In this document: positions 391 to 23,003 of the stretch, piece after piece
Layout: every line of letters starts with the position of its first letter
How positions within the stretch are numbered: the stretch's first letter is position 1
NCBI GenBank assembly: GCA_977017575.1
Contig: CDRNVI010000119.1
Coordinates: 1 to 23,003 of the forward strand
Length of the DNA stretch: 23,003 bases
Direction of reading: 5' to 3'
Source: Paramoeba atlantica
Lineage: Eukaryota; Protista; Discosea
Position numbers and translations under genes: made by a program
The notes under the pieces: model-generated
Database searches by the model: none
Seen by the model: the letters and a program-made list of their open reading frames with translations, nothing else
Told to the model about the DNA's origin: nothing

Positions 391-513
391 ATAATGCTAA
401 TTGCAATACGTTAAAAAAATACCTAAACTATTGATCAGTATTATCGTGCTTTTCGTGCCTATCTCTCGACTAAATCATCAGCTTTACCTAAATCAGGTGC
501 AAATTTTATGCGT

Positions 514-1296: not shown

Positions 1297-1312
1297 ATAA
1301 AATAACTCCTAT

Positions 1313-1921
1313 CTATAACTTCGGATCACTAGATGAACTACCATCAGGCGGCAGATCATGACTGGACGATGAGCTACTACTACTAGACGAACTAGCAGGT
1401 TCAACAGAACTAAAATAACCAAATAAATTCTGATGCATGCTATTAGCACTAAATAAATTACTGCCGGGCAAACTATCAACGCTAACTTCTTGTAAGTGTA
1501 GTATTTTATACACGCTACTACACTTAAAATTTTCTATCCCCTCATAAACTTTTGCTCTAAAAGTTTCTAGATCTAGCATTTTCAGTGGATTGCGCGACAC
1601 TCTTAGGTTATTCCAGCCTTGCTCGTCAAAGACTGATCTTAAGAAAGAATTAATTGCTGCGTCAACAAATTCTTTAGGCATCTTATTAAAATTTCTAAAT
1701 GCGGCAAAAATAAAAGCAATATGCCTAGCAGATATGTAGAACAATTTATCATCACGAAGCTCTTTAGGCTCCCCTAATATTTTGAAATCTTCAAACTCTT
1801 CCGACTCCTCTGACTCTTCGAGTTTTTCTTGTTCTTTTGGCTTTTCTAATCCTTCCAATTCTTCTGCTTCTTCCAACTCTTCTAGACCTTCTGACTCTTC
1901 TGATCCTTCTGAAATTTCCGA
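1313..1921 (-). CDS. Hypothetical protein, 5'-truncated at the left junction; Glu-rich repeats at N-terminal side and poly-Ser C-terminus
   Basis: The track ORF 1313..1876 stays open upstream (SEISEGSEESEGLEELEEAEE) to 1921; the next codon upstream is a TAA (1922-1924) supplied by mitochondrial sequence. The true start is missing. Confidence 0.7.
   Translation of the reverse strand, partial: SEISEGSEESEGLEELEEAEELEGLEKPKEQEKLEESEESEEFEDFKILGEPKELRDDKLFYISARHIAFIFAAFRNFNKMPKEFVDAAINSFLRSVFDEQGWNNLRVSRNPLKMLDLETFRAKVYEGIENFKCSSVYKILHLQEVSVDSLPGSNLFSANSMHQNLFGYFSSVEPASSSSSSSSSSSHDLPPDGSSSSDPKL
1790..1918 (-). repeat. Imperfect in-frame 9-nt tandem repeats encoding x-E-E / x-E-G tripeptides
   Basis: Recurring ttctgactc / ttctgatcc / ttctagacc / ttccaactc-type units on the + strand, translating on the minus strand to SEG SEE SEG LEE LEE AEE LEG. 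Confidence 0.6.
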
Positions 1922-2228
1922 TTAGGATTTGCTTTTTTTTTTATCGGTGAATATGCTAATATTATATTAATGAGTGCATTAAATGTAATTTTATTTTTAG
2001 GAGGTTGATTACCACCTTTTAATTTTAATTTTTTTTTACCGCCTATAGTATGATTTACAATAAAAATTGTTTTAATGATATTTTTATTTATAGTAATAAG
2101 AGCCATGTTACCTAGATATAGATATGATCAATTAATGATATTAGGTTGAAAAGTATTTTTTACCGTTATCATTAGGTTTATTAGTTTTCTATGCAGGTAT
2201 AATGATTGGTTTTGATTTTTTACCTTAA
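1922..2228 (+). CDS. nad1: Mitochondrial NADH dehydrogenase subunit 1, C-terminal fragment (TGA=Trp, one +1 frameshift)
   Basis: [32 protein letters not shown]...[20 protein letters not shown], then after one extra T in the run at 2156-2161, LPLSLGLLVFYAGIMIGFDFLP* (TAA 2226-2228). Missed by the ORF track. Confidence 0.95.
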
Positions 2229-2261
2229 TTTTTTAGAATAATAAAATATAAAAAATTTTGA

Positions 2262-3736
2262 ATGTTATTAAAAATTTTACTTTTTTTACCATTATTTTTT
2301 GCGTTTATTTTAAGTTTAATACCTAAGAAAAAAATTATATTATTAAAACAATTATCTTTATTATTTAGTATAATAATTTTTTTTTATTGTATTAAATTAT
2401 TAGGTAATTTTAATATATATTATTCGTATATTCAATTTCAATCAAGTATTAGTTATTATCCTGGTATGGATTTTAGTATAGGTATAGATGGTATTTCTAT
2501 TTTTTTTATATTATTAATGAGTTTACTTTTACCTATTTCGTTATTAGTAAATTGAGAAAGTGTGAAATATCGTAATAAAGATTTTACTATTACTTTATTT
2601 ATATTAGAATTTTTAGTTTTTTGTATTTTTTGTTGTTTAGATATATTTTTTTTTTATATATTTTTTGAAGGTGTTTTAATACCTATGTTTTTTATTATAG
2701 GTATATGAGGTTCAAGACAACGAAAAATTCATGCTGTTTATCAATTTTTTTTATATACTTTTTTTGGATCAATATTTATGTTAGTATCTTTTTTAATAAT
2801 TTACTTACATGTAGGTTCTACAAATTGAAATATAATTAAATATATTGAATTTTCTGATCAACGACAATTAATATTATGATTAGGTTTTTTTATAGCATTT
2901 GCTATAAAAGTACCAATGATACCTTTTCATATATGATTACCAGAAGCTCATGTCGAAGCACCTACAACAGGTTCTATCTTATTAGCTGGTATTTTATTAA
3001 AATTAGGTACTTATGGTTTTTTAAGATTTTTATTACCTTTATTTCCTTATGGAATGAAATTTTTTTTCACCTTTAGTTATAGTTATTTGTATAATTAGTG
3101 TTATATACGGTTCGTTAGTAACAATTAGACAAATAGATTTGAAAAAAATAATAGCATATTTCATCTGTTGTACATATGAATTTTGCAATAATAGGTTTAT
3201 TTGCTAATAATTTAGAAGGTTTACAAGGTAGTTTATTCTTAATGATTAGTCATGGTATAATATCAAGTTCTTTATTTTTTTGCATAGGTGTTTTATATGA
3301 TCGTTATCATAGTCGTATATTATATTATTATGGAGGTTTAGTACAAGTTATGCCTATATTTGCTGTAATATTTATGATTTTTTCTTTAAGTAATATGGGC
3401 TTCCCTGGAACAAGTGGTTTTATTGGTGAAATTTTAATATTAATAGGAGTTTTTTTATGAAATATAAAAATTTCATTATTATTATTTACTAGTGTTGTTT
3501 TTGCAGCTGTTTATTCAATATGGTTATATAATAGATTAATTTTCGGTGAAATAAAAAATTATAATATAATGATTTATAATAATTTTTATTATAAAAAATG
3601 ATTTATAAAATTTTCAGATATTACTAAAAGAGAATTCTTTTTAATATTACCATTTATTTTTTTAAATTTTTTATTAGGTTTTTATCCTGATTTAATTTTT
3701 AATGTAACTTATCTATCAATTTTATCACTTATTTAA
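2262..3736 (+). CDS. nad4: Mitochondrial NADH dehydrogenase subunit 4 (TGA=Trp, two +1 frameshifts)
   Basis: [77 protein letters not shown]. Needs removal of one T at 3060-3067 and one at 3159-3161. TAA at 3734-3736. Confidence 0.95.
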
Positions 3737-3747
3737 ATTTAATTATT

Positions 3748-5241
3748 ATGAATTTTACAATTATTTTTAAAAATCAGGAATATCATTCTATATATAATGA
3801 TATTAAATATTTATTACCAGAAATATTTTTAATTTCTGGTGTTTTATTAATTTTAGTATTTATTATTTTTTATTCAAATATTAATGTATATAAATATATA
3901 AAATTAGTTTATTGTACTATTAATTTATTGGTATTTATATTAATATTATTTATATTATTAAATATTAATAATATAGATAATAATTTTATTATTTCATCTT
4001 ATTTATTATATAGTGACGGTATAATTTTTTTTTATAAAAATTTATTGTCAATAATTATGATTATATTATTAGTTACTTCTTATAATTATATGAGATTAAA
4101 TAAATTATTAATATTTGAATTTTATATATTAATGTTATTATCTTTTATTGGTATGATAACTTTATTATTATCATATGATTTTATTACAGCATATCTTTCT
4201 ATCGAATTACAAAGTTTATGTTTTTATATTTTAGCGGCAATAAATAGAAATAAGAATAGTTCTATAGAAGCTGGTTTAAAATATTTTATATTAGGATCAT
4301 TTTCATCAAGTTTATTAATAGTAGGTATAGCAATTATATATGGTGTAACTGGATTTACTAATTTTTATGATTTATCAAAATTATTTGAATTAGGTTTATA
4401 TAATATAAATTGGGATTCTTATATATTTATAGGTTTATTATTTATTAATATAGGATTATTTTTCAAATTAGCTATACCTCCGTTTCATATATGATTACCA
4501 GATATTTATGAAGGTTCTTTGAAAATAGTATTAGCTATTTTTGCATTATTGCCTAAATTGGCTATATTAATATTTTTTTGAAAAATATATTCTATAATTT
4601 TAATAAAAGATTTAATCGACTGACAAATATTTTTTTTAATATTTATACTATTATCTTGATTTATAGGTATATTAGGGGCTTTACAATCTAAAAAATTTTC
4701 AAGATTAATAGCTTACAGTTCTATTAATCATATGGGTTTTATATTATTAATTTTAATATTAAATGATGTATTGACTTTAACTTTATATATAATAATTTAT
4801 ATTTTAGCTTTAATAAATATTTTAATAATATGATTAAATATATTTAAATTTAATAATTATAAAGGGATTAATACTATATATCAATTTTTATATATTATAA
4901 AATCTAATAATTTATTATTTATAATTTTATTAATAGCTATATTTTCATTAGCAGGAATACCACCATTAGCTGGATTTTTCAGTAAATTTTTTATTTTCAT
5001 TAGTGCATTAAAACAAAATTATTATTTATTAGTAGTAATTGGACTTTTATTTAGTGTAGTTAGTTGTTTTTATTATTTAAGGTTAATAAAAATTATTATG
5101 TTTAATAATAGTTTTTATTGATTTTTTTTAACTCCTTTAAAAAGAAGTTATGCTTACATAATTGTTATATTATTTGTAGTAAATTCGATTTTTATATTAT
5201 TATTGCCTTTTTTATTAGAATATTTAAATTATATAATATAA
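3748..5241 (+). CDS. nad2: Mitochondrial NADH dehydrogenase subunit 2, 497 aa
   Basis: IELQSLCFYILA, IEAGLKYFILGSFSS, FKLAIPPFHIWLPDIYEG, LIAYSSINHMG, SLAGIPPLAGFFSKF. Continuous frame with TGA=Trp; TAA at 5239-5241. Confidence 0.95.
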
Positions 5242-5253
5242 TAATAATAATTT

Positions 5254-5859
5254 ATGAAGTATTTATATTTAAATCAGTTAATTTCAAGTAATTATAATAT
5301 ATCTTTACATAAAAAAAATAAATGAGGTAGACAACAAATTAATAATATAATTGGTTGATGTAAATTACATAATTATGTAATTATAGATATTGTTTCTATA
5401 TTTTTTAATATAAAAAATATAATTAATATAATTAATTATATTTCAACTAAATTAGGTATATCTTTATTATGTTTATTATCAGATAGTAATATAATTAATA
5501 CTTCATTAAAAAGAGTAAAAATAAAAAATTTTTATATGGTATATTTAGATAAAATTTATGGTTTTATATCTAATTTTTATATGTTTATTAAAAAAGGTCG
5601 AAAACATTATAAAAATATAGTTAATTATAGATCAAAAAGGTTACCTGATATAGTATTTATGTCAAAAGATAGTTGAAAAGATTATAATAATTTTTTTAAA
5701 ATATTTTTAGAATATAAAATATTATCTATAAAAAACACATCATTTTTAGAAAAGGATATTCATATTTGTTATAATATTATGGTTAATAATTCTTTAATTA
5801 TATATAATTTATGAAAATATATATATAAGCAAAATAGAATTTTATTTAAAAAATGTTAA
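5254..5859 (+). CDS. rps2: Probable highly divergent mitochondrial ribosomal protein S2, 201 aa
   Basis: Open frame with TGA=Trp, not in the ORF track. N-terminus LISSNYNISLHKKNKW...IIG..KLHNYVIIDI resembles the uS2 start, and RLPDIVF resembles the uS2 LPD motif. Overlaps the next gene by 7 nt (ATGTTAA). Confidence 0.6.
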
Positions 5860-6566
5860 AAGTAAATTATAAAAAATTAAATTTAATAAGAGTTTATAAA
5901 AGAGATCTTTGAGGTAGAATAATATTAAATAGAAAATTATTATTAATTAGAAATTATATTATTAAATTATTAAAAATAAAAAAATTTAAATATAATAAAA
6001 GAATAAATTTTTATAGGATTAATAATTTTGAGAAACCTGTATATTTTAGAAGAAGAACTAGATATGGTAAATATTTTATTTTACGAAGACAATTTAGAAT
6101 TTTTTATGGTTTTTTAAGTATTAAAAATATAAAAAAAATCATAAAAAAAAGTTTTAAAAAAAAATATGCTTTAAGTTATTTTATTTATATGATGGAATCT
6201 AGATTAGATGTATTAGTTTATAGATTACATTTAGTTAAAAGTGTTAGATCAGCTAGACAATGAATATTTAATGGTAATATTATTGTTAATAATAATATTA
6301 TAATTAATCCACAATATAATTTAAAAAAAGGTGATATATTAACTTTAAATAAAAAAAAAATATTATATTTTAAAAAAAAATTATATTATAATATAAAAAC
6401 AAAAAATTGATCTCGAAGTATTATACCTAATTATATTGAATATGATTATAATAATTTTGTTTTTAAATTTATAAGTCTTAATATATATGATGTACCTTTT
6501 TTTGCTCCGGTTACTTCTTATACTTTTTTAAATATAATGAATTTTTATACAAGATATTATTTTTAA
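5853..6566 (+). CDS. rps4: Mitochondrial ribosomal protein S4, 237 aa
   Basis: YGKYFILRRQFRIFYG, MESRLDVLVYRLHLVKSVRSARQWIFNGNIIVN, PQYNLKKGDIL (S4 RNA-binding motif). TGA=Trp; TAA at 6564-6566. Confidence 0.92.
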
Positions 6567-6681
6567 TTTATTAAAATAATAATATCTTTAAACTTGATCT
6601 TTTTTTGTTTTGTGTGTTTATTTATCGTTATTACACATAAATTTATTATAATAATAATTATGTATTTTAAGATAAATAATT

Positions 6682-8182
6682 ATGGACGCTAATAATCAGC
6701 AAAATAATATTTATTTTGGAATTGTAATTAAAGTTAAGGATGGTATTGCAACAATTAAAGGATTAGAAAACGCTAAAGCAGGAGAAGTTTTAGAATTTTC
6801 TAGTGGTGCTAAAGGATTAGCATTAAACTTAGCTGAAAATGAAATTAGTTCTGTTATTTTTGGTAATGAACAATTAATTAAACAAGGGGTTCGAGTCAAA
6901 AATACAGGTAAATTAATGACTATTAATATTTTCTTCTAAATTATTAGGTAGAGTTATTAATGCTATAGGTGAGCCTATAGATAATGATACAGCTATTGCT
7001 GCAACAGAAGTTAAAAATGTTGAGCAAAAAGCAGTAGGTATTATCGCTAGACAATCTGTTCATGAACCTATGTTAACAGGTATGAAATCTATAGATTCTT
7101 TAATTCCTATAGGTCGTGGTCAACGTGAATTAATTATTGGTGATAGACAAACAGGTAAAACTTCTATAGCTGTCGATACTATTATTAATCAATTAAATTA
7201 TAATAATAATGTTGATTTTAAAAATGTTAATTTATATTGTGTTTATGTAGCTATTGGTCAAAAAAAATCAACAGCTGCTAGAATATTTAGTACTTTACAA
7301 TCATTTCAATCAGCGCAATATACAGTTATTGTAAGTGCATTTGCTTCTGAATCTGCATCATTACAATATTTAGCACCTTATGTAGGTACTTCTATAAGTG
7401 AGTATTTTAGAGATAATAAAAAACATTGTGTCATTATATATGATGATTTAACTAAACATGCTGCCGCTTATAGACAAATGTCTTTATTATTAAGAAGACC
7501 ACCAGGTAGAGAAGCTTATCCAGGAGATGTTTTTTATTTACATTCTAGATTATTAGAAAGATCTTCTAAATTATCTACTAAATTAGGTTCAGGTTCAATA
7601 ACCGGTTTACCTGTTATTGAAACATTAGAAGGAGATGTTTCGGCTTATATTCCAACTAATGTTATATCTATTACAGATGGTCAAATATTTTTAGATACTG
7701 AACAATTTTATTCAGGTATAAGACCAGCAGTAAGTGTTGGTTTATCGGTTAGTAGAGTTGGTGGAGCTGCACAACCTAAATTAATGAAATCATTAGCAGG
7801 TTCTTTAAAGGTTGGTTTAGCCCAATTTAGAGAAGTTGAAAGTTTTGCTAGTTTAGGTTGTGATATAGATCCTGTTACTCAACAATTATTAGATCGTGGT
7901 TATAGATTAACTGAATTATTTGTACAAAGTAGATTTAATAATTATTCATTAGATTTATCTTTATTATCAGTTTTTGCAGGTTCTAAAGGTTTTTTTGATA
8001 AATTAGCTATAAATAAAATAAATGGTGTATTTGAAGAAATGGTTTTAGAAAGTAAAAAATTATTTTGATTACCTTTTTTTCAATTTTTAAATGATGTAAT
8101 TCATCCTGATAAAGTTGGTCTAAATTATAACTTTTTAGAAAGTTTTTTAGGCTCTTATAATAAATGATGTATTAATATTTAA
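6682..8182 (+). CDS. atp1: Mitochondrial ATP synthase F1 alpha subunit, about 499 aa (one +1 frameshift)
   Basis: Joins track ORFs 6682..6939 and 7070..8068 by removing one T at 6929-6932 ([20 protein letters not shown]). Has [17 protein letters not shown] (Walker A) and [23 protein letters not shown]. Reads through TGA to TAA at 8180-8182. Confidence 0.97.
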
Positions 8183-8187
8183 AAAAA

Positions 8188-9207
8188 ATGATTAATTTTG
8201 TAAATAATATAATTTTTTCAAATTTAGAGGCAGATTATGCTTTACCTGGACAATTAGGTTTTCAATACCCAGCTAATACTATAGCTCGAGGAATTATTGA
8301 TTTGCATAATCATATTATGTTTTTTTTAGTTTTTATTGTTGTATTTACTTTTGCTATGATTTATTTCACTTTAAGTACATTTACAATAAATAATAATAGT
8401 AATTTAGAGATTTTTAATAAAGTAAAAAATTTTTATAATGTAAGAATTTCGCATAATACATTATTAGAAACTCTTTGAATTATAATACCAAGTTTAATAT
8501 TAATATCTATAGCAATACCGTCTTTTGCTTTATTATATGCTATGGAAATATCTGGTGTAAGTCTGTTAACAATGAAAGTTACAGGACATCAGTGATATTG
8601 ATCTTATTCTTTTGTATTTAGTTTAGATAATCCTCAAATTGTATATGATATTGCGAGTAATACAAATATAGAGTTAGGAGGTTCTTTTTCAAATAATATA
8701 GCTGAATTTAGTTTCGATAGTTATATGGTACCTACTAATGAATTATCAGATAAAGGTTTACGTTTATTAGAAACTACAAATCCAGTAGTATTGCCTGTAG
8801 ATACTTTTATAAAAGTATATGTAACAGCTAGTGATGTATTACATTGTTGAGCTGTCCCTTCATTAGGTATAAAAATAGATGCTTGTCCTGGTAGGTTAAA
8901 TCAGGTAAATTTATTTATAGATAGAATTGGTCATTTTTATGGTCAATGTAGTGAATTATGTGGTGTAAATCATGGTTTTATGCCTATTGAAATATATAGT
9001 ATAACTAAATTAGATTATATTACATATTTATGTTTAGCTTGTGAAGATTTTAGAAATAATTCGTTTAATCAACTAATAAATTATTATCATTATTTTTATG
9101 AAGATGGAAGTAATGCTATTGTTTTTACTAGAGGTTTCTATGATTGATGACAAGATCAACTTAATTTATCAATAAAAGAATTTTTAAATAAAGAAAATAG
9201 TATATAA
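8188..9207 (+). CDS. cox2: Cytochrome c oxidase subunit 2, 339 aa, with C-terminal extension
   Basis: QLGFQ, GHQWYWSY (both W are TGA), DVLHCWAVPSLG, and CuA ligands [18 protein letters not shown] at 9205-9207. Confidence 0.97.
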
Positions 9208-9210
9208 AAT

Positions 9211-10080
9211 ATGATTAATAAATTTAAACATTTTCATTTTTGACATATTGTAACAATTAGTCCATGACCTTTATTATTATCTATGTTTGCATTATCAATG
9301 CCAGTAGGTTTAGTAACTTTTTTTCAAGGATTTTATTATGGTGTACCTGTATTTTTTATAGGTTTAATTATGGTAATATTTATTATATGTTTATGATTTA
9401 GAGATATAGTAATTGAAGCAAGTTATGAAGGTCATCATACTAAACAAGTTCAATCAAGCTTAATTATAAGCTTTTTACTTTTTATTTTTTCAGAAGTAAT
9501 GCTTTTTGTAGCTTTTTTCTGAGCTTTTTTTCATTCAAGTATTTTTCCTACAGTAGAATTAAATTGTAGTTGACCTCCCGTAGGAATGAGTGAAATAATT
9601 ATGGATCCTTTTGGTATTCCTTTATTAAATACTTTATTATTATTAACATCAGGTGCTACTTTAACTTTAGCACATTTATATTTAAAACAAGGATATATGG
9701 ATAAATGTTTATTAACTATGGTTGTTACAATTGTATTTGCTGTATTATTTTTATCTTTTCAGTTTTATGAATATAGTGTTTCTGCTTTTGATATTTCAGA
9801 TGGTGTTTATGGTTCAACTTTTTTTTGTTGTACTGGTTTACATGGTTTTCACGTTATTGTTGGTACTATAGCTTTAAGTATGACTACTTATCGTATATAT
9901 TTATCACATTTTTCACGTAATCACCATTTAGGTTTTGAATTTGCAGCTTGATATTGACATTTTGTTGATGTAGTATGATTATTTTTATATATGATTATAT
10001 ATTGTTGAGGTAGTGATATGGTAGCTCCTCTTATATTAGAATTAAAAGATGGAAAAGAGAATATTTTTTATTTAGTATAA
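9211..10080 (+). CDS. cox3: Cytochrome c oxidase subunit 3, 289 aa
   Basis: SPWP, [63 protein letters not shown]. TAA at 10078-10080. Confidence 0.97.
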
Positions 10081-10087
10081 ATTTACA

Positions 10088-11749
<1,662 letters not shown>

Positions 11750-11765
11750 TAATTTTACTAATATA

Positions 11766-11839
11766 ATCCCTCTGGTCTAATTGGTTAAGACATATCACTC
11801 ATAATGGTACTGATATAGGTTCAAGTCCTATGGGGGATA
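11766..11839 (+). tRNA. trnM/I(cau): tRNA with CAT anticodon (elongator Met or lysidine-modified Ile)
   Basis: Cloverleaf: acceptor ATCCCTC/GGGGGAT fully paired, anticodon arm TATCA-CTCATAA-TGGTA, T arm ATAGG-TTCAAGT-CCTAT. Confidence 0.9.
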
Positions 11840-11840
11840 A

Positions 11841-11912
11841 ATAGTTGTAGTGTAGTGGTTAACATATTAGTCTTCAAAACTAATGACATAGGTTCAAATC
11901 CTATCAACTGTG
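11841..11912 (+). tRNA. trnW(uca): tRNA-Trp(TCA), reads TGA
   Basis: Acceptor ATAGTTG/CAACTGT paired, anticodon arm TTAGT-CTTCAAA-ACTAA, short variable loop, normal T arm. Confidence 0.92.
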
Positions 11913-11944
11913 TTAATTATAGATGATATAATTAAATATAATAA

Positions 11945-12016
11945 AATAGGGTGACTGAAAGGTAAAGTATTGTTTTTTGGCAGCAAATCGTGTAGGTTCG
12001 AGTCCTACTCCTAAGT
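11945..12016 (+). tRNA. trnQ(uug): tRNA-Gln(TTG), acceptor mismatches at positions 1 and 2
   Basis: Anticodon arm TTGTT-TTTTGGC-AGCAA, T arm GTAGG-TTCGAGT-CCTAC, acceptor AATAGGG/TCCTAAG. Confidence 0.88.
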
Positions 12017-12029
12017 ATTAAAATTTTTT

Positions 12030-12102
12030 TTAAGGATAGTATAAATGGTTATTATAATTGATTGCAAATCTATAGATATCGGTTCGAGTCCGTTTCCTAA
12101 CT
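12030..12102 (+). tRNA. trnC(gca): tRNA-Cys(GCA), acceptor mismatches at positions 1 and 3
   Basis: Anticodon arm ATTGA-TTGCAAA-TCTAT, T loop TTCGAGT, acceptor TTAAGGA/TCCTAAC. Confidence 0.85.
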
Positions 12103-12129
12103 TTTTTAAATTTAATATAAATATAATAA

Positions 12130-12202
12130 ATACCTATAGTTTAATTGGTTAAAACATGCATTTGATAAGTGCAAATTGATAGTTCGAGTCTATCTGGGGT
12201 TA
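12130..12202 (+). tRNA. trnI(gau): tRNA-Ile(GAT), acceptor mismatches at positions 2 and 3
   Basis: D stem GTTT/AAAC, anticodon arm TGCAT-TTGATAA-GTGCA, acceptor ATACCTA/TGGGGTT. Confidence 0.9.
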
Positions 12203-12211
12203 TAAATAAAA

Positions 12212-12284
12212 AAATAGTTAGCTCAATTGGTAGAGCATCGGCCTTTTAAGCTGAGGGTTATAGGTTCGAGCCCTATACTATCTA
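12212..12284 (+). tRNA. trnK(uuu): tRNA-Lys(TTT), acceptor mismatch at position 2
   Basis: D stem GCTC/GAGC, anticodon arm TCGGC-CTTTTAA-GCTGA, acceptor AAATAGT/ACTATCT. Confidence 0.93.
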
Positions 12285-12290
12285 TAAAAA

Positions 12291-12363
12291 TATGGAATGG
12301 TGTAATAGGTTAGCACATCGAGTTGTGATTTCGATAGTATGAGTTCAAGTCTCATTTCTTACC
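12291..12363 (+). tRNA. trnH(gug): tRNA-His(GTG), acceptor mismatches at positions 1-3
   Basis: Anticodon arm TCGAG-TTGTGAT-TTCGA, acceptor TATGGAA/TTCTTAC, C discriminator. Confidence 0.9.
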
Positions 12364-12429
12364 TAAATTAAGAATAATAAAATTAATAAAATATATATTT
12401 TATTAAAATTTTTTTATTAATTTGTAAAG

Positions 12430-12503
12430 ATAGATGTGATGGAATTGGTAGACATATTAGTTTTAGGCACTAAATTTTAGGGGTTCGAGTCCCCTCATCT
12501 GTA
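12430..12503 (+). tRNA. trnL(uag): tRNA-Leu(TAG), short variable loop
   Basis: Acceptor ATAGATG/CATCTGT paired, anticodon arm TTAGT-TTTAGGC-ACTAA, T arm AGGGG-TTCGAGT-CCCCT. Confidence 0.92.
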
Positions 12504-12537
12504 TTGTATGTATAAAAAAAGAAAAAATATTTTTTAT

Positions 12538-12608
12538 AAGGATGTAGTTTAAAGGTAAAATATCTATTTTGGGTGTAGACGTTATAGGTTCAAATCCTAT
12601 CGTCCTGA
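12538..12608 (+). tRNA. trnP(ugg): tRNA-Pro(TGG), acceptor mismatch at position 1
   Basis: Anticodon arm TCTAT-TTTGGGT-GTAGA, acceptor AAGGATG/CGTCCTG (A1:G72; the usual Pro pair is C1:G72). Confidence 0.92.
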
Positions 12609-12621
12609 TAATTATAATAAC

Positions 12622-12695
12622 AAGGAGGTAGCTTAATAGGCTAAAGCTTTAACCTGTCGAGTTAAAAGATGAGGGTTCGAATCCCTTCCTCCGCA
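12622..12695 (+). tRNA. trnD(guc): tRNA-Asp(GTC), acceptor mismatches at positions 1 and 2
   Basis: Anticodon arm TTAAC-CTGTCGA-GTTAA, acceptor AAGGAGG/CCTCCGC. Confidence 0.92.
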
Positions 12696-12711
12696 TAAAA
12701 TATAATAAAAT

Positions 12712-12931
12712 ATGTTTATTTTATTACTATATAATCAAGATGTTTTGTATATAAAATATAAAATATTATCTATTATATCTATTATATCAATTTATGATAA
12801 ATGTACATTTACCATATGAAATAACAGTCATAAAACATACATATTTTACTTAAAATTTTTTTAAAAAGAGAAAAAATTATAAAATAAATAATTATAATAA
12901 TTTAAAAGATTTTATTTTTTTAATAAAATAA
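12712..12931 (+). CDS. Small ORF inside the tRNA cluster; possible degenerate ribosomal protein S19
   Basis: As read, ATG 12712 to TAA 12864 gives 50 aa. Removing one T at 12856-12862 extends it to 72 aa ending at 12931. KILSIISIISIYDKCTFTIWNN...NYKINNY loosely follows the uS19 pattern KIWSR.S.I.P.F.G.TF.VYNG...GHKFGEF. Confidence 0.35.
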
Positions 12932-12995
12932 AAAATTAGTAAATTAATATGATTATTTATTTTAGATATATCTTACTTTAATAATATATGATTTA

Positions 12996-13067
12996 TTTTT
13001 CTTCGTCTAATGGTTAGGACATTGCTCTTTCACAGCAGAAATAAGGGTTCAAATCCCTTAGAAATGA
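12996..13067 (+). tRNA. trnE(uuc): tRNA-Glu(TTC), acceptor mismatch at position 2
   Basis: D stem GTCT/GGAC, anticodon arm TTGCT-CTTTCAC-AGCAG, acceptor TTTTTCT/AGAAATG. Confidence 0.9.
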
Positions 13068-13168
13068 AATTATTTTATCCGTATTAATTTAATTTAATAA
13101 AATTTTTTTGTAAATTTTTGAAATCTATTATACACTGATTTAAGTATATTATTTGTCACATATAATAA

Positions 13169-13220
13169 GGGGGGTTTGGGGGGTTTGTATAAGAGATAAT
13201 ATTTTATTTTCATATACAAA
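13169..13220 (+). other. G6-T3-G6 tract followed by a hairpin in a non-coding spacer
   Basis: GGGGGG-TTT-GGGGGG at 13169-13183, then TTTGTATA (13184-13191) pairing with TATACAAA (13213-13220). The sequence is seen directly; its function is unknown. Confidence 0.6.
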
Positions 13221-13241
13221 AATTTTTATTAATTATTTTTT

Positions 13242-13324
13242 AATGGTGTGATGGAATTGGTAAACATGATAGACTTAAAATCTATTGCCTTTTAGGCTTG
13301 AGGGTTCGAGTCCCTCCTCCAATA
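13242..13324 (+). tRNA. trnL(uaa): tRNA-Leu(TAA), long variable arm, acceptor mismatches at positions 2 and 6
   Basis: Anticodon arm ATAGA-CTTAAAA-TCTAT, variable arm GCCT-TTT-AGGC, acceptor AATGGTG/CTCCAAT. Confidence 0.92.
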
Positions 13325-13342
13325 ACGATGAGTTAATTATTT

Positions 13343-13415
13343 TTTAAGATGGAGTAATAGGTTAACTCAGTGGTCTCATGAGCCACAGATGTAGGTTCGA
13401 GTCCTACTCTTCTTA
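13343..13415 (+). tRNA. trnM(cau): tRNA-Met(CAT), probable initiator, acceptor mismatches at positions 1-3
   Basis: D stem GAGT/ACTC gives the A11:U24 initiator signature. Anticodon arm GTGGT-CTCATGA-GCCAC, acceptor TTTAAGA/TCTTCTT. Confidence 0.88.
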
Positions 13416-13514
13416 TATAATTACGTAAATATTATTATGGATTACATTTGAATATGTAATCAATTTTGAATTTTTATTAATTAGTAAAATATATGTATAA
13501 AAATATTTTCGAAA

Positions 13515-13754
13515 ATGGCAGGACAAGAAATTATGTTAATTTTTGCAAAAAAAGTAGGTGCTGGTTTAGCTACTATAGGTTTAGCAGGTGCTGGAGTAGG
13601 TATAGGAATAGTTTTTGGAGCTTTTTTAATTGCTTATTCACGTAATACTACAATTAAAAACGATTTATTTGGTTATACTTTATTAGGTTTCGCATTAACA
13701 GAAGCAATTGCTCTGTTTGCCCTAATGATGGCTTTCTTAATCTTATATACTTAA
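13515..13754 (+). CDS. atp9: ATP synthase F0 subunit c (subunit 9), 79 aa
   Basis: [21 protein letters not shown] glycine zipper and [21 protein letters not shown] with the proton-carrying Glu. Confidence 0.98.
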
Positions 13755-13781
13755 TCAACCTATTTTTGTTGTTTTGTATTT

Positions 13782-13855
13782 AATTGGTTAGTTTAATTGG
13801 TTAAAATTATGATCTTCTAAATCATTAGATATAGGTTCGAGTCCTATACCAATTA
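13782..13855 (+). tRNA. trnR(ucu): tRNA-Arg(TCT)
   Basis: Acceptor AATTGGT/ACCAATT fully paired, anticodon arm ATGAT-CTTCTAA-ATCAT. Confidence 0.93.
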
Positions 13856-13863
13856 TAATTTTT

Positions 13864-13944
13864 TATAGTGTGGCTGAGCGGTAAAGCGGTAGACTGTAAA
13901 TCTATTGTATTTATACATCGTAGGTTCGAATCCTACCACTTCCA
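13864..13944 (+). tRNA. trnY(gua): tRNA-Tyr(GTA), acceptor mismatches at positions 1-3
   Basis: Anticodon arm GTAGA-CTGTAAA-TCTAT, variable arm TGTAT-TT-ATACA, acceptor TATAGTG/CACTTCC. Confidence 0.93.
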
Positions 13945-14000
13945 TTTGATTAAAATATATAATAATGTTGAATAATTTTTAAACAAATCATTTTAAAATT

Positions 14001-15001
14001 TTTTTATAAATTTAAAATAGTATTAAACGGATATCTTGCCAATAATAAGTTTATAGACGTTTTAAAACGTAATGTGAAAGTAAAATAATAATAATTTTTC
14101 AATATTCACGTATCTAAAGGGAAAACCCAATTAAATTAAATAATTAAAGAATATCTAATGAATTGAATCATCTTAGTAATTAGTTAAAAAAAATAAAAAT
14201 GATATTATTAGTAGTGGCGAGCGAAAATAAAATAGCTAAATTAAACAATAATATAAATAAAAAATATAATAATTTGGAATAATTAACAAAATAAGTAATA
14301 GTCTTGTTATTTTTTATTATTATTATTGGTTTTGAGTAAAATAAAAACTAAATTTGTTTGAAGATTAGAGTACCATCTCTAAAGGCTAAAGAATTATTAT
14401 TGAGCGATAGTGAAAAAGTACTGTGAAGGAAAGATGAAAAGAAATTTTTTAAAAATGTTGAAATAGATTTTGAAATTTAATACTAAATAGCACTTTAAGC
14501 ATAAATAATTATATGTTAAAAGGTACCTTTTGCATAATGGGTCAGTGAGTTAATTATTGTAGCAAAATAAAAAATTATTAAATTTTTTAATTGTAATTAA
14601 TATATTTATAGTTATAATAATTAGACCCGAAACCAAGTGATCTAGTCATGGGCAGATTGAAGTTAATTAAATATTAATGGAGGATCGAACCCGTTTATGT
14701 TGCAATATATTGGGATGACCTATGATTAGGGGTGAAAGGCTAATCAAACTTGGAGATAGCTGGTTTTCTACGAAATCTATTTAAGTAGAGATGAAATTTA
14801 AATTTATATAAGGTAGAGCTACCATATTGGGTTGTTGAATCCATATGAACTTCAAATAAATATAAAGTAAAAATTTTAATTTCGATATATGGCGAAAAGG
14901 TTGTATATCAAGAGGGAAAGAGCCCAGATTATAAATTAAGGTTTCTAAATTAATATTAAGTTAAAAAGTATATTATAATATTAACAATGAATAGGAGGTA
15001 G

Positions 15002-15035
<34 letters not shown>

Positions 15036-16785
15036 CAGCTCACTATTGATAGATATTTATATACAAAAATATAACGAAAATAAATATTATACCGAAATTA
15101 TAAAATATTATTTAAAATAATAATATTGGTAGTAGAACGTTTTATAAAAGAAAAAAAAAATTGTTAAATTATAAAATTAAAATTGAATATACTGGCATAA
15201 GTAGCAAAAATAATGTTATAAACATTATCATCTAAAAATCTAAGGTTTCTAATGTCAAGATAAACTGCATTAGGTTAATCGGTCCCTAAAATGAATATGA
15301 TAGTAATAATTGAAGGGTAGTTAAAGAGTTATAAGGATAACATAATATTTTTAACGTTATTAGTAGATGACAGTTTATTTTTTAAATATTTTAGGATCAA
15401 ATTTTAATAAATATAGTAAAACATTGTGTGATATATTCGAATATATTGATTGAAATATTTAAAAAATAAATTCAAGAAAGAATACTAATATATAAAACCG
15501 TACTAAATCCTACACAGGAGGATTAGTAGAGAATACTAAGATGAATAATTGAATAATATCGAAGGAACTCGGCAAATTAACTCTGTAACTTCGGGAGAAA
15601 GAGTATTTTTATATATACATTATATGTATATAAAAATGTAACAGAATAGAGGATGGCGACTGTTTAACAAAAACACAGGACTTTGCAAAATTAATTAATG
15701 ATGTATAAGGTCTGACACCTGCCCGGTGCTATAAAGGTAATTGTTATTGTTAATATATTATTTAATGTATTAGCTTTATATAGAATGAATAGTAAACGGC
15801 AGCTGTAAATATAACGGTTCGAAGGTAGCGAAATTCCTTGTCGAGTAAGTTTCGACCTTGCATGAATGGTGTAACGACTATCCTACTGTCTCCGGTATTA
15901 TATTAGCGAAATTGAATTCTCTGTGCAGATGCAGCGTATTAATAGCTAGACGGAAAGACCCTATGCACCTTTACTGCAGTTATATTTTGTTATTAAAAAT
16001 TAAATTTATAGGATACAAACTAATCGTTTTAAAATTTTAATATTAGTTAATTGTTTAGATAATCTTGGAATAGTTTGAATTTAATTTTTAAAACTTAATA
16101 ATTTTTTATTGACAGAATATATTTGGTAGTTTCTCTGGGGCGGAGACCTCATAAAATGTAACTGAGGTGTACAAAGGTAATTAAAATTTTATTAGAAAAT
16201 TTTGGCGTGTAATGGCTAAAAATTACTTAACTGTGAGATTTACAAATCAAACAGAGATCTTTTTTATTAAAAAGGTCGGTCATAGTGATCCAATATAATT
16301 GAATGGAAAATATATTGCTCAACGGATAAAAGGTACGCTAGGGATAACAGGCTTATGACTCCGGAGAGAAGATATCGACGGGGTTGTTTGGCACCTCGAT
16401 GTCGATTGGTCACATCCTGGTTAAGAAAAATGTTCCAAGGGTAAGGCTGTTCGCCTTTTAAAGTGGCACCTGAATTGGGTTCAGAACGTCGTGAGACAGT
16501 TCGGTTCCTATCTACTATTAATTAATTAAAATTGAAGGAATCTTATCTTAGTACGAAAGGACTGGAGAAGGAATATCACTGGTAAATCGGTTGTAATTAT
16601 AATTGCATAGTCGAGTAGCTAAATATTAATAATATAATTATTGAATTCAATCAGATATAAGAAGATTATCCTAAAATATTTTAAAAGTATTGATTGTAAA
16701 AGATTATTACGAAATTAAGTTATGTGTGTAAGTCCTGTGAAGGATTGAGCTAAATAATTTTAAGAATCAATCTAATTTATAAAAA
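14001..16785 (+). rRNA. rnl: Mitochondrial large subunit (23S-like) rRNA, no intron seen
   Basis: Conserved blocks GACCCGAAACCAAGTGATCTA, GAAGGTAGCGAAATTCCTTGTC, GACGGAAAGACCC, GGATAACAGGC, GGCACCTCGATGTC, AGTACGAAAGGAC. Ends inferred from a perfect 12-bp terminal helix, 14001-14012 with 16774-16785. Confidence 0.97.
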
Positions 16786-16830
16786 GAAAAAAGAAAAAAG
16801 AAAAAAAATTTCTATATAAGAAAAAATAAA

Positions 16831-16891
16831 ATATATAATATTTTGAAAATATTATATGTAATAAAACAACAAACTTTAAATTAAAGTTTGT
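16831..16891. other. Two AT-rich hairpins in the rnl-trnN spacer
   Basis: 16831-16842 pairs with 16848-16859 (one G:U). ACAAACTTTA (16869-16878) pairs perfectly with TAAAGTTTGT (16882-16891). Confidence 0.45.
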
Positions 16892-16905
16892 AATTTGTAA
16901 AACAA

Positions 16906-16978
16906 TACTTGGTAGTTTCAATGGTAAAATAATTGGCTGTTAACCAATCAGATGTAGGTTCGAATCCTGCCCAGGTCG
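16906..16978 (+). tRNA. trnN(guu): tRNA-Asn(GTT), acceptor mismatch at position 1
   Basis: Anticodon arm ATTGG-CTGTTAA-CCAAT, acceptor TACTTGG/CCAGGTC. Confidence 0.92.
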
Positions 16979-16992
16979 TTGTATAAAAATAA

Positions 16993-17081
16993 GTTTATGT
17001 GGCTGAGTGGTTTAAAGTAATCCTCTTGAAAAGGATCGTATAATTTTAATTATACCGTGGGTTCGAATCCCACCATAATCT
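16993..17081 (+). tRNA. trnS(uga): tRNA-Ser(TGA), long variable arm, acceptor mismatch at position 2
   Basis: Anticodon arm ATCCT-CTTGAAA-AGGAT, variable arm GTATAATT...AATTATAC, acceptor GTTTATG/CATAATC. Confidence 0.92.
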
Positions 17082-17143
17082 TAATATAAAAAAAAAGGAA
17101 AAAATTTATGTAAATTATATAATATATAATATATTATATATAA

Positions 17144-18678
17144 ATACTTGTATGTTTTATTCTGGCTTTGAGTAAATGCTAGTAGTTCGCTTAACACATG
17201 CTAGTCAATTAAAATTTAAAATTTAAAATTAATGGCGTAAGGGTGAGTAATATATAAAAACGGGACTTATAATTATGTTTATATTATAAACTGGTTTATA
17301 AAGATTTAGGTAGTTGGAGGTGTAATAGACTAACAAGCCGATAATTCTTAGTTGATCTTAGAAGGAGGTACAACCACATTGGGAATGAGAAAAGGCCCAA
17401 GTTCCATTAGGAGGCAGCAGTGAGGAATATTGAACAATGAGCGAAAGCTTGATTCAGCGAAACTACCTGAATTATGACAATTTATTGAAAAATTCTTGTT
17501 TAAGTGAGCATAATGAGGTTAAACTTAAGAATAAGCATCGACTAACTTCGTGCCAGCAGTCGCGGTGATACGGAGGATGCGGGTGTTACTCAGCATTACT
17601 GGGCGTAAAGCGTATGATAAGTGGTTTATTTTTTAATAATATAATTTTAAAGGCGTTATTAGTAATAATGAATAAATTATATATTAGTAAACTAAGAGTA
17701 TTATTCAGATATATAGTATTCATAGAGGAAAGGTGAAATTTTATGATACTATGGAGACTATCAGAAGGTGAAAGCTATATATTAGATTTATACTGACACT
17801 AAAGTACGAAGGTATGGGTATCAAAGAGGATTAGAGACCCTTGTAGTCCATACAGACAACGATGGATGCTAACTGTAGGAAATATTTTTGTGGTTTAGCT
17901 AACGCGTAAGCATCCCGCCTGGGGAGTATGATCGCAAGATTTGAACTCAAAGAAAGTGGCTGAGATTTGGTACGAACGGTGGAACATGTGGTTTAATCTG
18001 ATATAACGCATAAAATCTTACCAATTCTAGATTGAAAAAAATTATAATAAATATAGTAAACTTTATATAATTTTTTTAAGCAGGTGTCGCATGGCTGTCG
18101 TCAGCTCGTGTAGTGATATGTATGGTTAGGTCCTGTAACGAGTGTAATCCTTACAATATAATAAAATATATGATATATTATTATATTATTATATGTTATA
18201 TTATTATATGTTATATTATTATATTTTATTATATTGTATTATTAATTATATATTAAATGAAATAGAGGAGGACGTCAAGTAGGTATGGCCCTGATGAATT
18301 GGGCTACACACGTGTTACAAAAATAATTACAAAAAAAAAATAAATTGTGAAATTTATTTAAATTATAAAGATTATTATAGTTCGGATTATTTTTTGAAAA
18401 TAAAAATATGAAGTTGAAATCGTCAGTAATCGAAAATTAGAATGTTTCGGTGAAATGGGATCCAAATCTAGTACACACTGCCCGTCACGCCAAGAAAGTT
18501 GTTAATATTGGAAAAATTATAATTAATAATTTATATTTATTAATTATTTTTAATCTATTGGAGATAATTAATTTTTAATAAAATATTATTAATTATTTAA
18601 TTTGAATGTATTGATAGTAATCAGGGTGAAGTCGTAACATGGTAGTGGTAGGGGAACCTGCCGCTGGATGGAAAATAA
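17144..18678 (+). rRNA. rns: Mitochondrial small subunit (16S-like) rRNA; ends approximate
   Basis: TTAACACATGC, GGAGGCAGCAGTGAGGAATATTG, GTGCCAGCAGTCGCGGTGATAC, GGATTAGAGACCC, GCATGGCTGTCGTCAGCTCGTG, GAAGTCGTAACATGGTA, h45 GTAGGGGAACCTGC. No CCTCC anti-Shine-Dalgarno at the 3' end. Confidence 0.97.
18181..18225 (+). repeat. Three tandem copies of a 15-nt unit inside rns
   Basis: TTATATTATTATATG at 18181 and 18196, TTATATTATTATATT at 18211, with degenerate copies on either side. Confidence 0.75.
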
Positions 18679-18789
18679 ATTTATATTTTTTTAAAGGTAA
18701 GCTTATCGAACCCCTTTAAAATATTATATATTAAATTATATTCTCGTAAAAATTTTTTATAAGAGTGTATAATTTATATTAATACAAAT
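18679..18789 (+). ncRNA. Candidate divergent mitochondrial 5S rRNA
   Basis: About 111 nt between rns and trnS(gcu). Terminal helix 18679-18687 with 18781-18789 (one mismatch), a hairpin TTTAAAGG/CCTTTAAA whose loop contains CGAAC (5S loop C motif), then a long second hairpin at about 18731-18775. Confidence 0.45.
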
Positions 18790-18798
18790 CATATTTTA

Positions 18799-18887
18799 GG
18801 TGAGTTGACCGAGTGGTTGAAGGTGTCGATCTGCTAAATCGATATATTATTCATATAATATCATGGGTTCGAATCCCATACTTACCT
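18799..18887 (+). tRNA. trnS(gcu): tRNA-Ser(GCT), long variable arm
   Basis: Acceptor GGTGAGT/ACTTACC paired, anticodon arm TCGAT-CTGCTAA-ATCGA. Confidence 0.93.
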
Positions 18888-18920
18888 TATAAAAAAATAA
18901 TTTGTAATTAAAAAAAGTTT

Positions 18921-18993
18921 TTGGGGGTAGCTCAGTAGGTAGAGCGAAAGCCTGAAAAGCTTTAGGTCATTGGTTCAAACCCAATTCTCCACA
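18921..18993 (+). tRNA. trnF(gaa): tRNA-Phe(GAA), acceptor mismatch at position 1
   Basis: D stem GCTC/GAGC, anticodon arm AAAGC-CTGAAAA-GCTTT, acceptor TTGGGGG/TCTCCAC. Confidence 0.93.
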
Positions 18994-19110
18994 TAAAACT
19001 TATATTAAATTTAATTATATATGGAATCATTAAAAAGAAAAAGAAAGAAAATTAAAAAAATAGAAAAAGTTTAAAAAAATAGAAAAATTAAGGAAAGAAA
19101 TAATACAAAT

Positions 19111-19692
19111 ATGTTTGAAAAAAAAGAAAGTTTAATAAAAAATAGAAAAATTAAATTAATAAAAATTAATAGATTTAAATTACCTTCAGTTACTTGATTA
19201 TATAAAAAAAGGTTTAATATAAAATTAAAAAGCAAGTATATATATGCAGCAAAATTATCTTTTTTTAAAAAAAGATATTTATTTATTAATATACTAAAAA
19301 ATTTTTTAAAGGGTTCAAAATTAGATTGGTTATCTTTGAAATTTTGTACTATTAATTTAATATTAAAATTTAGAAAAAATACTTATTTAAATTTTTCGCA
19401 TATTAATGGTAATGTAATAAAAAATTTTTCATGTGGTTTTTATTATAAAAAATCATTAAAAAAAACATATTTTGCTTTAAATTCATTAATTGTAGCTTCA
19501 AAAATTGATTTTAAATATTTATATATGAAAAAATGATTCATATTAAATATAATTTATAAATATTATACTCGTAAAATTTTGAGAAATTTAAAAGAATTAT
19601 TTGAGACTACACCTTATAATTTAAAATTTATTAATTTTATAAAATCAAAAGCTCATAATGGTATAAGAAAGAAAAAGAGAAGAAGAAAATAA
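19111..19692 (+). CDS. rps11: Mitochondrial ribosomal protein S11 with a Lys/Arg-rich N-terminal extension, 193 aa (start may be 19021)
   Basis: RKNTYLNFSHINGNVIKNFSCGF and C-terminal KAHNGIRKKKRRRK* match uS11 (NNT..T.TD..GN...W.S.G; PHNGCRP.K.RR). TGA=Trp. Confidence 0.8.
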
Positions 19693-19695
19693 TAA

Positions 19696-20019
19696 ATGAA
19701 AAAGAAAAAAATTATAAATTATTTAGATAATTCTTTTTTAAGTTTATTATCTATAGAATATAAAAAAAAATTAAATAATAATATATCTATTGAATTAAAG
19801 TATTTTTATTGATTATATAAGAATGTATATATACGTAATATTAAAGGATTAATTATAAATTTTAATAAAAAACAATATTTAAATATGGAAAGTTTTTTAT
19901 TATATTATAGGTATAAAAATATACGATTAAATCAATTATATTTTGTTACTTCACCTTTTAATCTATTTTTAAAATATAAAATTAGTAATATTAAAAAATA
20001 TAAATTATATATATTATAA
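19696..20019 (+). CDS. Unassigned 107-aa ORF, weakly reminiscent of ribosomal protein S8
   Basis: Clean ATG to TAA frame with one TGA, filling the gap between rps11 and nad9. ISIELKYFY, YIRNIK..KKQY and LYFVTSPFNLF loosely echo uS8 motifs (I.LKY; I..ISKP..R.Y; I.ILSTSKG). Confidence 0.5.
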
Positions 20020-20031
20020 ATAAAAAAAAAT

Positions 20032-20467
20032 ATGTTATTAAAAAAAAATAGTAATAATTATGCTGTAAATTATATATTAAATTTACTAATTAAATATATT
20101 TCGCATATAAAAATAACAGATGAATTTATTAAAATTAAATTAGTATCAAAAGATTATTTAGGTTTTGTTTTAAATATTTTTAATAAGCATACTTTTTTAA
20201 GATATAAGGTAATAACTGATATTTGCTGTAGTGATTTTATTGATAGAGCTAAACGTTTTGAAATTGATTATAATTTATTAAGTATAGATTATAATTCTAG
20301 ATTAATTATTTCTGTATCTTGTGATAAATTAGATGTTATAAGATCTATTACTGATATTTATTTAGGTGCCGATTGGTTAGAACGTGAAGTTTGAGATATG
20401 TATGGTATTTTTTTCATGGGTCATAAAGATTTAAGACGTATATTAACCGATTATGGTTTTGAAGGTT
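20032..20467 (+). CDS. nad9: Mitochondrial NADH dehydrogenase subunit 9, 3'-truncated at the right junction
   Basis: [50 protein letters not shown]; the expected (H/Y)PLRKDFP does not follow. Confidence 0.95.
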
Positions 20468-20544
20468 ACCATTGGAAAATTACGGTACACCTTTTTTTGT
20501 GTGGATATTGTTTGTTTTTTGCTCAACTTGTTTTCCATCTTCAT
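20468..20544 (-). CDS. First ~26 codons of an iron-containing alcohol dehydrogenase family protein (KdnB-like), 3'-truncated at the junction
   Basis: ATG overlaps the HAD stop (TAATG). Translation [26 protein letters not shown]; YRNFPMV matches my recollection of the N-terminus of this Flavobacteriaceae family (YRNFPMVPRVVFG). Not database-checked. Confidence 0.55.
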
Positions 20545-21967: not shown

Positions 21968-21991
21968 CTGATAGTTTTATGGTTACTTAAG

Positions 21992-22561: not shown

Positions 22562-22585
22562 GGCTTCGTCTAAAATATAATATTC

Positions 22586-23002: not shown

Positions 23003-23003
23003 T

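Follow-up and report, generated by a model that had tools for sequence, protein, structure and literature searches.

Chimeric long reads and contigs that arise by library ligation or amplification in the sequencing of non-axenic protists join unrelated molecules of one preparation seamlessly; abundant templates, i.e. the organelle and the bacteria living alongside, are over-represented in them, every join is a singleton and the parents are intact elsewhere. High chimera rates have been documented for amplified protist DNA sequenced with long reads (bioRxiv 10.64898/2026.06.11.730069), and Paramoeba preparations are known to be rich in bacterial DNA (PMC5601477). The contig described in the present study (C119) resembles these chimeras in its seamless joins, abundant templates and intact parents, its joins being present on no other contig of the assembly, and differs from the usual case in having three pieces, not two. 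The closest named relative of its mitochondrial part is Paramoeba pemaquidensis, with a mitochondrial genome of 48,522 b (PMC5601477), and both derive from marine amoebae cultured with bacteria. In comparison, the mtDNA observed here is smaller (~39.4 kb), shares 83% identity with P. pemaquidensis in atp1 and clearly represents a different species or genus. NUMTs and other organelle-to-genome transfers also place organelle DNA next to non-organelle DNA with the look of end-joining; unlike them, the flanks here are from two bacteria, the mtDNA has not diverged from the resident copies, and the arrangement finds no support in a second contig. A NUMT was rejected, the contig ends being bacterial and not host nuclear DNA.

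The window, i.e. the whole stretch of DNA analysed (23,003 b), is the entire contig C119, one small contig of a 45.7-Mb protist assembly. Three blocks were observed (Table 1), with GC contents of 35.7% (1-1922), 23.1% (1923-20468) and 41.4% (20469-23003). An earlier note on this DNA had placed two joins at 1921/1922 and 20467/20468; the joins exist, but the figures are one base off, the actual positions being 1923 and 20468/20469. Of the four genes that the note had reported as cut at the joins, three could be verified, namely nad1, nad9 and the bacterial gene for a 651-aa protein; the fourth is just a 25-codon open frame beginning at the stop of the HAD gene. The bacterial nature of both flanks was borne out by ordinary bacterial genes in each (Pfam, NCBIfam), and so was the guess at their taxonomy, with a 100% MAG match for a gammaproteobacterium on the left and a KdsB 91% identical to Flagellimonas for Flavobacteriaceae on the right.

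Table 1. Features of the 23,003-b window
Feature	Position	Strand	Evidence and remarks
Left bacterial block	1..1923		Gammaproteobacterial chromosome fragment (MAG OZ220716.1); base 1923 common to mtDNA
Phosphoglycolate-phosphatase-like HAD hydrolase, 3' part	1..390	+	Pfam HAD_2, 1.9e-21; runs off contig start
Orphan 260-aa bacterial ORF	514..1296	-	100% identical in MAG
651-aa acidic, Ser-rich bacterial protein, last ~203 codons	1313..1923	-	Cut by left join
mtDNA block	1923..20468	+	18,546 b; every gene on + strand
nad1, 3' fragment	1923..2233	+	Pfam NADHdh; first ~228 codons absent
nad4	2229..3733	+	Pfam Proton_antipo_M, 3.8e-25; split across three frames
Second Proton_antipo_M gene, probably nad2	3703..5238	+	PF00361 on pieces 3703-4491, 4834-5118
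Two mitochondrial ORFs	5251-5856, 5850-6563	+	Open in code 4 only
atp1	6676..8179	+	Pfam ATP-synt_ab_N; frameshifted
cox2	8176-9204	+	Pfam COX2_TM, COX2
cox3	9208-10077	+	Pfam COX3
cox1	10076-11746	+	Pfam COX1
15-tRNA cluster	11766..13945	+	ARAGORN, Rfam; atp9 within
atp9	13488-13751	+	Pfam ATP-synt_C
rnl	14004-16784	+	Rfam LSU
tRNA-Asn, tRNA-Ser (between rnl and rns)		+	ARAGORN
rns	17144-18679	+	Rfam SSU
tRNA-Ser, tRNA-Phe (after rns)	region ending 18994	+	ARAGORN
Two mitochondrial ORFs	19075-19689, 19696-20016	+	Open in code 4
nad9	20020..20468	+	Pfam Complex1_30kDa; cut after ..DYGFEGY, last ~50 codons absent
Right bacterial block	20469..23003		Flagellimonas-like (Flavobacteriaceae) genome fragment; genes all on - strand
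HAD hydrolase	20544-21248	-	Pfam, NCBIfam
KdsB	21239-21967	-	Pfam, NCBIfam
DUF4126	21992-22561	-	Pfam, NCBIfam
RecD-like helicase, 3' end	22586-23003	-	Pfam, NCBIfam

The middle block had been described as an AT-rich mitochondrial genome with TGA read as tryptophan, and most of this description was confirmed. Genes for nad, cox, atp1, atp9, rnl, rns and tRNAs were identified using Pfam, Rfam and ARAGORN, Pfam being run on the TGA-free pieces of the mitochondrial ORFs; the low GC content given above agrees with the AT richness. The two rRNAs gave bacterial-type, full-length Rfam matches (LSU, 1313.6 bits; SSU, 716.2 bits), and 19 tRNAs were observed, all on the + strand (ARAGORN, Rfam). Across six conserved genes 38 in-frame TGA codons were counted against 2 TGG, the tRNA with anticodon UCA at 11841-11912 is tRNA-Trp(UCA) and matches this reading, and the TGA codons at 8066 and 8165 in atp1 align with W in the independently called public protein P0121, which is intact (499 aa) and, the frameshift aside, 100% identical to the atp1 of the window. 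Two parts of the description did not hold: the block is not a whole mitochondrial genome, comprising only 47% of the ~39.4-kb circle, and the rps genes reported in it were not confirmed, the four unassigned ORFs (the two ORF pairs of Table 1) having no Pfam match. Those between the probable nad2 and atp1 possibly encode ribosomal proteins. The block is a fragment of the mtDNA resident in this assembly, that of its own Paramoeba-like amoebozoan.

The same mtDNA was found on at least 20 sibling contigs at ~99.9% identity; they show collinearity and together complete a ~39.4-kb circle, a size derived from coordinates 12558 to 33437 of C114. The block is 99.86-99.95% identical to the copies on C108, C113, C114, C116, C120, C121, C123, C124, C126, C131, C133 and C134. 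At the position of the left join the mtDNA is unbroken in at least 9 sibling contigs base by base and in 15 by coordinates, and at that of the right join in 13. On these contigs the cut or broken genes are whole: nad1 has an intact frame of 329 codons on sibling contigs, nad4 is a single 501-codon frame in the C114 copy, and nad9 runs on as PFRKDFPL... to a stop in the three siblings examined (C120, C121 and C126). Four extra T's in T-runs are private to the mtDNA of the window and are missing from 9/9 sibling copies: that at 2156 frameshifts the tail of nad1, those at 3060 and 3159 break nad4, and that at 6929 frameshifts atp1. Among themselves, the sibling copies vary almost exclusively in homopolymer indels private to one copy, again at 99.86-99.95% identity, and this pattern, on comparison of the copies, is that of read error and not of divergence.

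The left flank is identical to MAG OZ220716.1, a complete gammaproteobacterial chromosome of 2,447,832 b, at 1923/1923 bases with 0 gaps (L026:4374-6296, equal to G001:C1:1955822-1957744). Past the left join this chromosome is still bacterial, contains no mtDNA and carries the remainder of the 651-aa gene, the full length of which is L026:3029-4984; only L026:4374-4984 is retained in the window. The product of the truncated hydrolase at the contig start is matched by NCBIfam phosphoglycolate phosphatase models through their C-terminal half, and zero Pfam or NCBIfam matches were obtained for the two orphan ORFs of this flank, the 260-aa one having weaker copies at G001:C1:364-366 kb (74-78% DNA identity). 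The right flank has a different source. Many proteins of Flagellimonas, Allomuricauda and Muricauda match its KdsB at 85-91% identity, and a 3,459,028-b contig encodes a protein identical to it. This flank is missing from the MAG genome (G001), in which the left flank was found as a positive control, and from all other contigs of the 45.7-Mb assembly.

At the left join one base is shared and no filler was observed, and the right join, mapped from the mtDNA side only, is seamless. The earlier note had pointed out the absence of a target-site duplication and of a terminal repeat and had stated that the flanks cannot be rejoined; consistently, no repeat of 9 nt or longer is common to the two joins, the flanks belong to different bacterial genomes, and the MAG chromosome is continuous at the site of the left flank. 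No recombinase or transposase was found in the window (ORF list, Pfam, NCBIfam). A restriction-site origin of the right join, where GGTTACC occurs, was also considered and has nothing in its favour. Neither join is present on any other contig of the assembly, and neither flank occurs elsewhere in its 45.7 Mb, so nothing else there backs either join.

At least four contigs of the assembly are chimeras of mtDNA and bacterial DNA (C119, C120, C121 and C126). The last three carry the same mtDNA with other breakpoints and are joined to the MAG at 2.24, 0.89 and 1.19 Mb, respectively; each join was observed a single time, and the four on the MAG differ in position on both partners. C95, C112, C118 and C131 are suspected, by coordinates alone, to be further chimeras. 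The molecule might also be real, fragments of mtDNA and of bacterial DNA having undergone end-joining within the amoeba, e.g. while prey or organelles were being digested, or a bacterium having acquired mtDNA. The gammaproteobacterium, with its small, repeat-rich 2.45-Mb chromosome joined to four mtDNA contigs, is probably intracellular or closely associated with the amoeba, and this and the resemblance of the joins to blunt end-joining would suit such an origin. However, the flanks belong to two different bacteria, so that a single genome did not receive an insertion, the MAG chromosome is uninterrupted at the site, the mtDNA piece departs from the resident genome solely by frame-breaking homopolymer errors, and each join is unique, the four on the MAG all lying at different places; a real molecule is thus extremely improbable. 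In particular, horizontal transfer of mtDNA into the genome of a bacterium was rejected, the right flank being absent from the left-flank chromosome and signs of integration being none.

The same joins might have arisen in silico, if an assembler or a later pipeline step had concatenated or mis-scaffolded three contigs without gap letters. The joins indeed have neither N nor shared sequence, and many small redundant mtDNA contigs are present in the assembly. However, overlap assemblers require overlap and scaffolders put in N, the bacterial ends of 1.9 and 2.5 kb both begin and end mid-gene and are absent as contigs elsewhere in the assembly, and a single-read error pattern spans the full mtDNA block, so that we consider this origin improbable. 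Without shared sequence at the joins an overlap assembler lacked a basis for joining; therefore, the join must lie inside a read.

Herein, we propose that C119 is very probably a chimera produced as an artefact and most likely represents a contig made from one chimeric long read. First, the joined partners come from unrelated genomes, i.e. the gammaproteobacterial MAG, the amoeba mtDNA and a Flagellimonas-like bacterium. Second, the parents are uninterrupted, the mtDNA at both joins and the MAG chromosome at the left join. Third, the joins are seamless and unique among the contigs of the assembly, the errors are of the single-read type, and similar chimeras recur in the assembly. The earlier note had also preferred an artefact to a real mitochondrion-to-bacterium transfer, and this preference is upheld by the two bacterial sources, the intact parents, the unique joins and the errors; its view of mtDNA lying within bacterial DNA is, however, reversed, as the assembly is that of the protist, the mtDNA belongs in it and the bacterial ends are foreign. 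We infer that ligation in vitro made the joins and that the contig represents one read. Three unrelated fragments of one DNA preparation, namely 1.9 kb from a gammaproteobacterial co-inhabitant present in abundance, 18.5 kb from the high-copy mtDNA of the amoeba and 2.5 kb from a Flagellimonas bacterium of the culture, would have been linked end to end, outside any cell, most likely by fragment-to-fragment ligation during construction of the long-read library. Short fragments would survive size selection only if joined to a long one. The contig would have been kept in the host assembly as mostly organellar, while clean bacterial contigs would have been binned out as MAGs. Against this proposal, a double chimera, with three pieces in the same molecule, is less frequent than a single chimera, and modern A-tailed library chemistry suppresses the ligation of one insert to another.

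Amplification, by MDA or a similar method, might have produced the chimera instead, a displaced 3' end having changed template two times, first from bacterium A to the mtDNA and then to bacterium B. This explanation also describes an artefact and differs from the proposed one only in the step that produces the chimera. In MDA combined with HiFi sequencing of protists, chimeras have been reported in up to 70% of reads (bioRxiv 10.64898/2026.06.11.730069), and the partners observed here, mtDNA and a co-inhabitant, are abundant templates. Despite these points, we regard amplification as unlikely: inverted chimeras make up as much as 91% of MDA chimeras in the same report, yet none was seen when they were sought by coordinates among the mtDNA contigs, those placed by two anchors being all collinear; the read N50 of MDA libraries is ~6 kb (bioRxiv 10.64898/2026.06.11.730069), compared with the 23 kb of this contig; and 1 nt is common at the left join, homology of annealing length not being seen. 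Ligation of fragments during library construction is preferred here.

Broken mtDNA might conceivably have been end-joined within the amoeba to intracellular gammaproteobacterial and ingested bacterial DNA, giving rare molecules of mixed origin; we give this very little credence, but if it were true, such molecules would be raw material for the transfer of organelle or bacterial DNA. The value of the present case lies in quality control; as biology, it shows no mitochondrion-to-bacterium transfer. The frameshifts in nad1, nad4 and atp1 on C119 should not be taken for pseudogenes or RNA editing. Moreover, the chimeras of this assembly, together with its at least 20 redundant, error-bearing mtDNA contigs, would mislead the mining of this assembly for HGT, NUMTs and organelle rearrangements.

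The window takes up all 23,003 b of contig CDRNVI010000119.1 (C119), one of 248 contigs in a 45.7-Mb assembly of eukaryotic genome size. Judged from its sequence, the contig is an artefact, the reading favoured in the earlier note. First, the left flank is identical to OZ220716.1 in 1923 of 1923 bases without a gap; its orphan ORF of 260 aa matched this record alone, a chromosome of 2,447,832 b labelled "MAG: Gammaproteobacteria bacterium". Second, the right-flank KdsB shares 85-91% identity with many Flagellimonas, Allomuricauda and Muricauda proteins, an identical protein is encoded on a 3,459,028-b contig, and the right flank had no match in the MAG chromosome, where the left flank, as positive control, was found. 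Thus, the flanks belong to two bacteria, of different phyla as had been proposed. Third, the mtDNA is intact across both joins and the MAG chromosome across the left one. The left join of the window, ..TTTCCGAT-T-AGGATT, corresponds to ..TTTCCGAT-T-GTCCTG in the MAG, which carries on as bacterial DNA and in which the gene cut in the window encodes 651 aa, and to ..TTCATCAG-T-AGGATT in the mtDNA; one base (1923) is common to MAG and mtDNA, and none is gained or lost. The right join has ..GAAGGTTA-CCATTGG where the mtDNA has ..GAAGGTTA-TCCGTTT. The mtDNA crosses the left-join point on at least nine contigs by sequence (15 by coordinates) and the right-join point on 13, C119 alone stopping there; nad1 (329 codons) is intact on sibling contigs carrying this mtDNA, as is nad9 on the three read (C120, C121, C126). 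Neither flank was found on other contigs of the assembly, and the two join regions have no repeat of at least 9 nt in common, in agreement with the reported lack of a target-site duplication or terminal repeat. Beside the right join, a 25-codon open frame, whose ATG overlaps the HAD gene stop, reads into the join and may represent the beginning of a further, fourth truncated gene. To the extent that sequence alone allows, a real insertion of mtDNA into a bacterial genome is excluded, given flanks from two different genomes, a MAG chromosome uninterrupted at its join site, mtDNA uninterrupted at both sites, an inserted copy without divergence from the resident mtDNA, and joins devoid of an integration signature.

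Apart from the "rps" genes, the mitochondrial gene content described earlier was recovered in the middle block, including both rRNAs and 19 tRNAs, each encoded on the + strand and one tRNA with anticodon UCA. Frames on the + strand form a dense row once TGA is read as Trp, and Pfam searches of TGA-free pieces named nad1, nad4, atp1, cox2, cox3, cox1, atp9, nad9 and a second Proton_antipo_M gene, probably nad2. The proposed TGA = Trp code is upheld by 38 in-frame TGA versus 2 TGG in six conserved genes, and by two atp1 TGA codons that line up with W of a public protein called independently. Four ORFs, open solely under this code, have no Pfam match; these are probably fast-evolving ribosomal-protein genes, and the "rps" genes of the earlier note remain unconfirmed. 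The block is mitochondrial but not a whole genome of 18.5 kb: because window positions 20468 and 1923 correspond to 12558 and 33437 of C114, a contig longer than one mtDNA unit length, the circle measures approximately 39,424 b, of which the window holds 47%. The atp1 piece of the window is identical to the public protein (499 aa), which occurs on contigs as long as 39,429 b, and its closest named relative is atp1 of Paramoeba pemaquidensis (83% identity).

The same mtDNA is present on at least 20 small contigs at approximately 99.9% identity; each redundant contig has its own homopolymer indels, and several also contain non-mitochondrial DNA. Sibling copies are 99.86-99.95% identical to one another, and their differences, nearly all private one-base homopolymer indels, have the look of single or few long reads, not of evolutionary divergence. 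Compared with nine sibling copies, four private extra T's in T-runs of the window shift the nad1 tail, split atp1 and leave nad4 distributed among three frames; each gene is one frame on C114, as is atp1 in the public protein. Three sibling contigs join mtDNA, at different breakpoints, to other sites of the same MAG chromosome, and C95, C112, C118 and C131 resemble such contigs by coordinates alone. Because the joins have no overlap, they are beyond the reach of an overlap assembler and must already have been present within a read. The likeliest source would be fragment-to-fragment ligation during library construction, the partners being those small molecules that were most abundant in a non-axenic amoeba preparation. 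Our second choice is that templates switched during amplification: chimeras have been documented at high rates in long-read sequencing of amplified protist DNA (bioRxiv 10.64898/2026.06.11.730069), but inverted mtDNA arrangements, looked for by coordinates among the mtDNA contigs, were not seen.

Features of the window (C119), of related contigs of the same assembly and of the MAG chromosome OZ220716.1
Sequence	Feature	Positions	Strand	Remarks
C119	Left flank	1-1922		GC 35.7%; phosphoglycolate-phosphatase-like HAD gene end, 260-aa orphan ORF, acidic protein end
C119	Left-flank ORFs (two)	514-1923	-	260 aa; 651 aa in MAG
C119	mtDNA	1923-20468	+	GC 23.1%
C119	Private extra T's	2156, 3060, 3159, 6929
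C119	Four ORFs	within 5251-6563 and 19075-20016
C119	LSU rRNA	14004-16784	+	full length
C119	SSU rRNA	17144-18679	+	full length
C119	Right flank	20469-23003		GC 41.4%; HAD hydrolase, KdsB, DUF4126, RecD-like helicase end
C119	25-codon frame	20469-20546	-
C119	Non-mtDNA	1-1923		MAG 1.96 Mb, 100%
C120	Non-mtDNA	13079-17350		MAG 2.24 Mb, 100%
C121	Non-mtDNA	1-1715		MAG 0.89 Mb, 99%
C126	Non-mtDNA	13916-18462		MAG 1.19 Mb, 99%
C108, C112-C116, C118, C120, C121, C123-C129, C131-C135, C221, C227, C229, C95	mtDNA
MAG	Weaker copy of left-flank ORFs (example)	364440-365649		74-78% DNA identity
MAG	~2.1 kb unit (examples)	37249-39377, 674516-676645, 1240781-1242919, 1414028-1416156, 1559525-1561655, 1636343-1638471, 2250371-2252499, 2261492-2263620

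The two left-flank ORFs, which matched no Pfam or NCBIfam family, both have low-complexity tails of acidic and poly-Ser type, and less similar copies are present at other places of the MAG chromosome; the two ORFs could represent a lineage-specific, effector-like family. A unit of approximately 2.1 kb is present there in at least 10 copies (81-92% identity), together with families of approximately 1.27-kb and 0.57-kb units, frequently adjacent. The small (2.45 Mb) and repeat-rich genome suggests that the gammaproteobacterium is a host-restricted symbiont of the amoeba.
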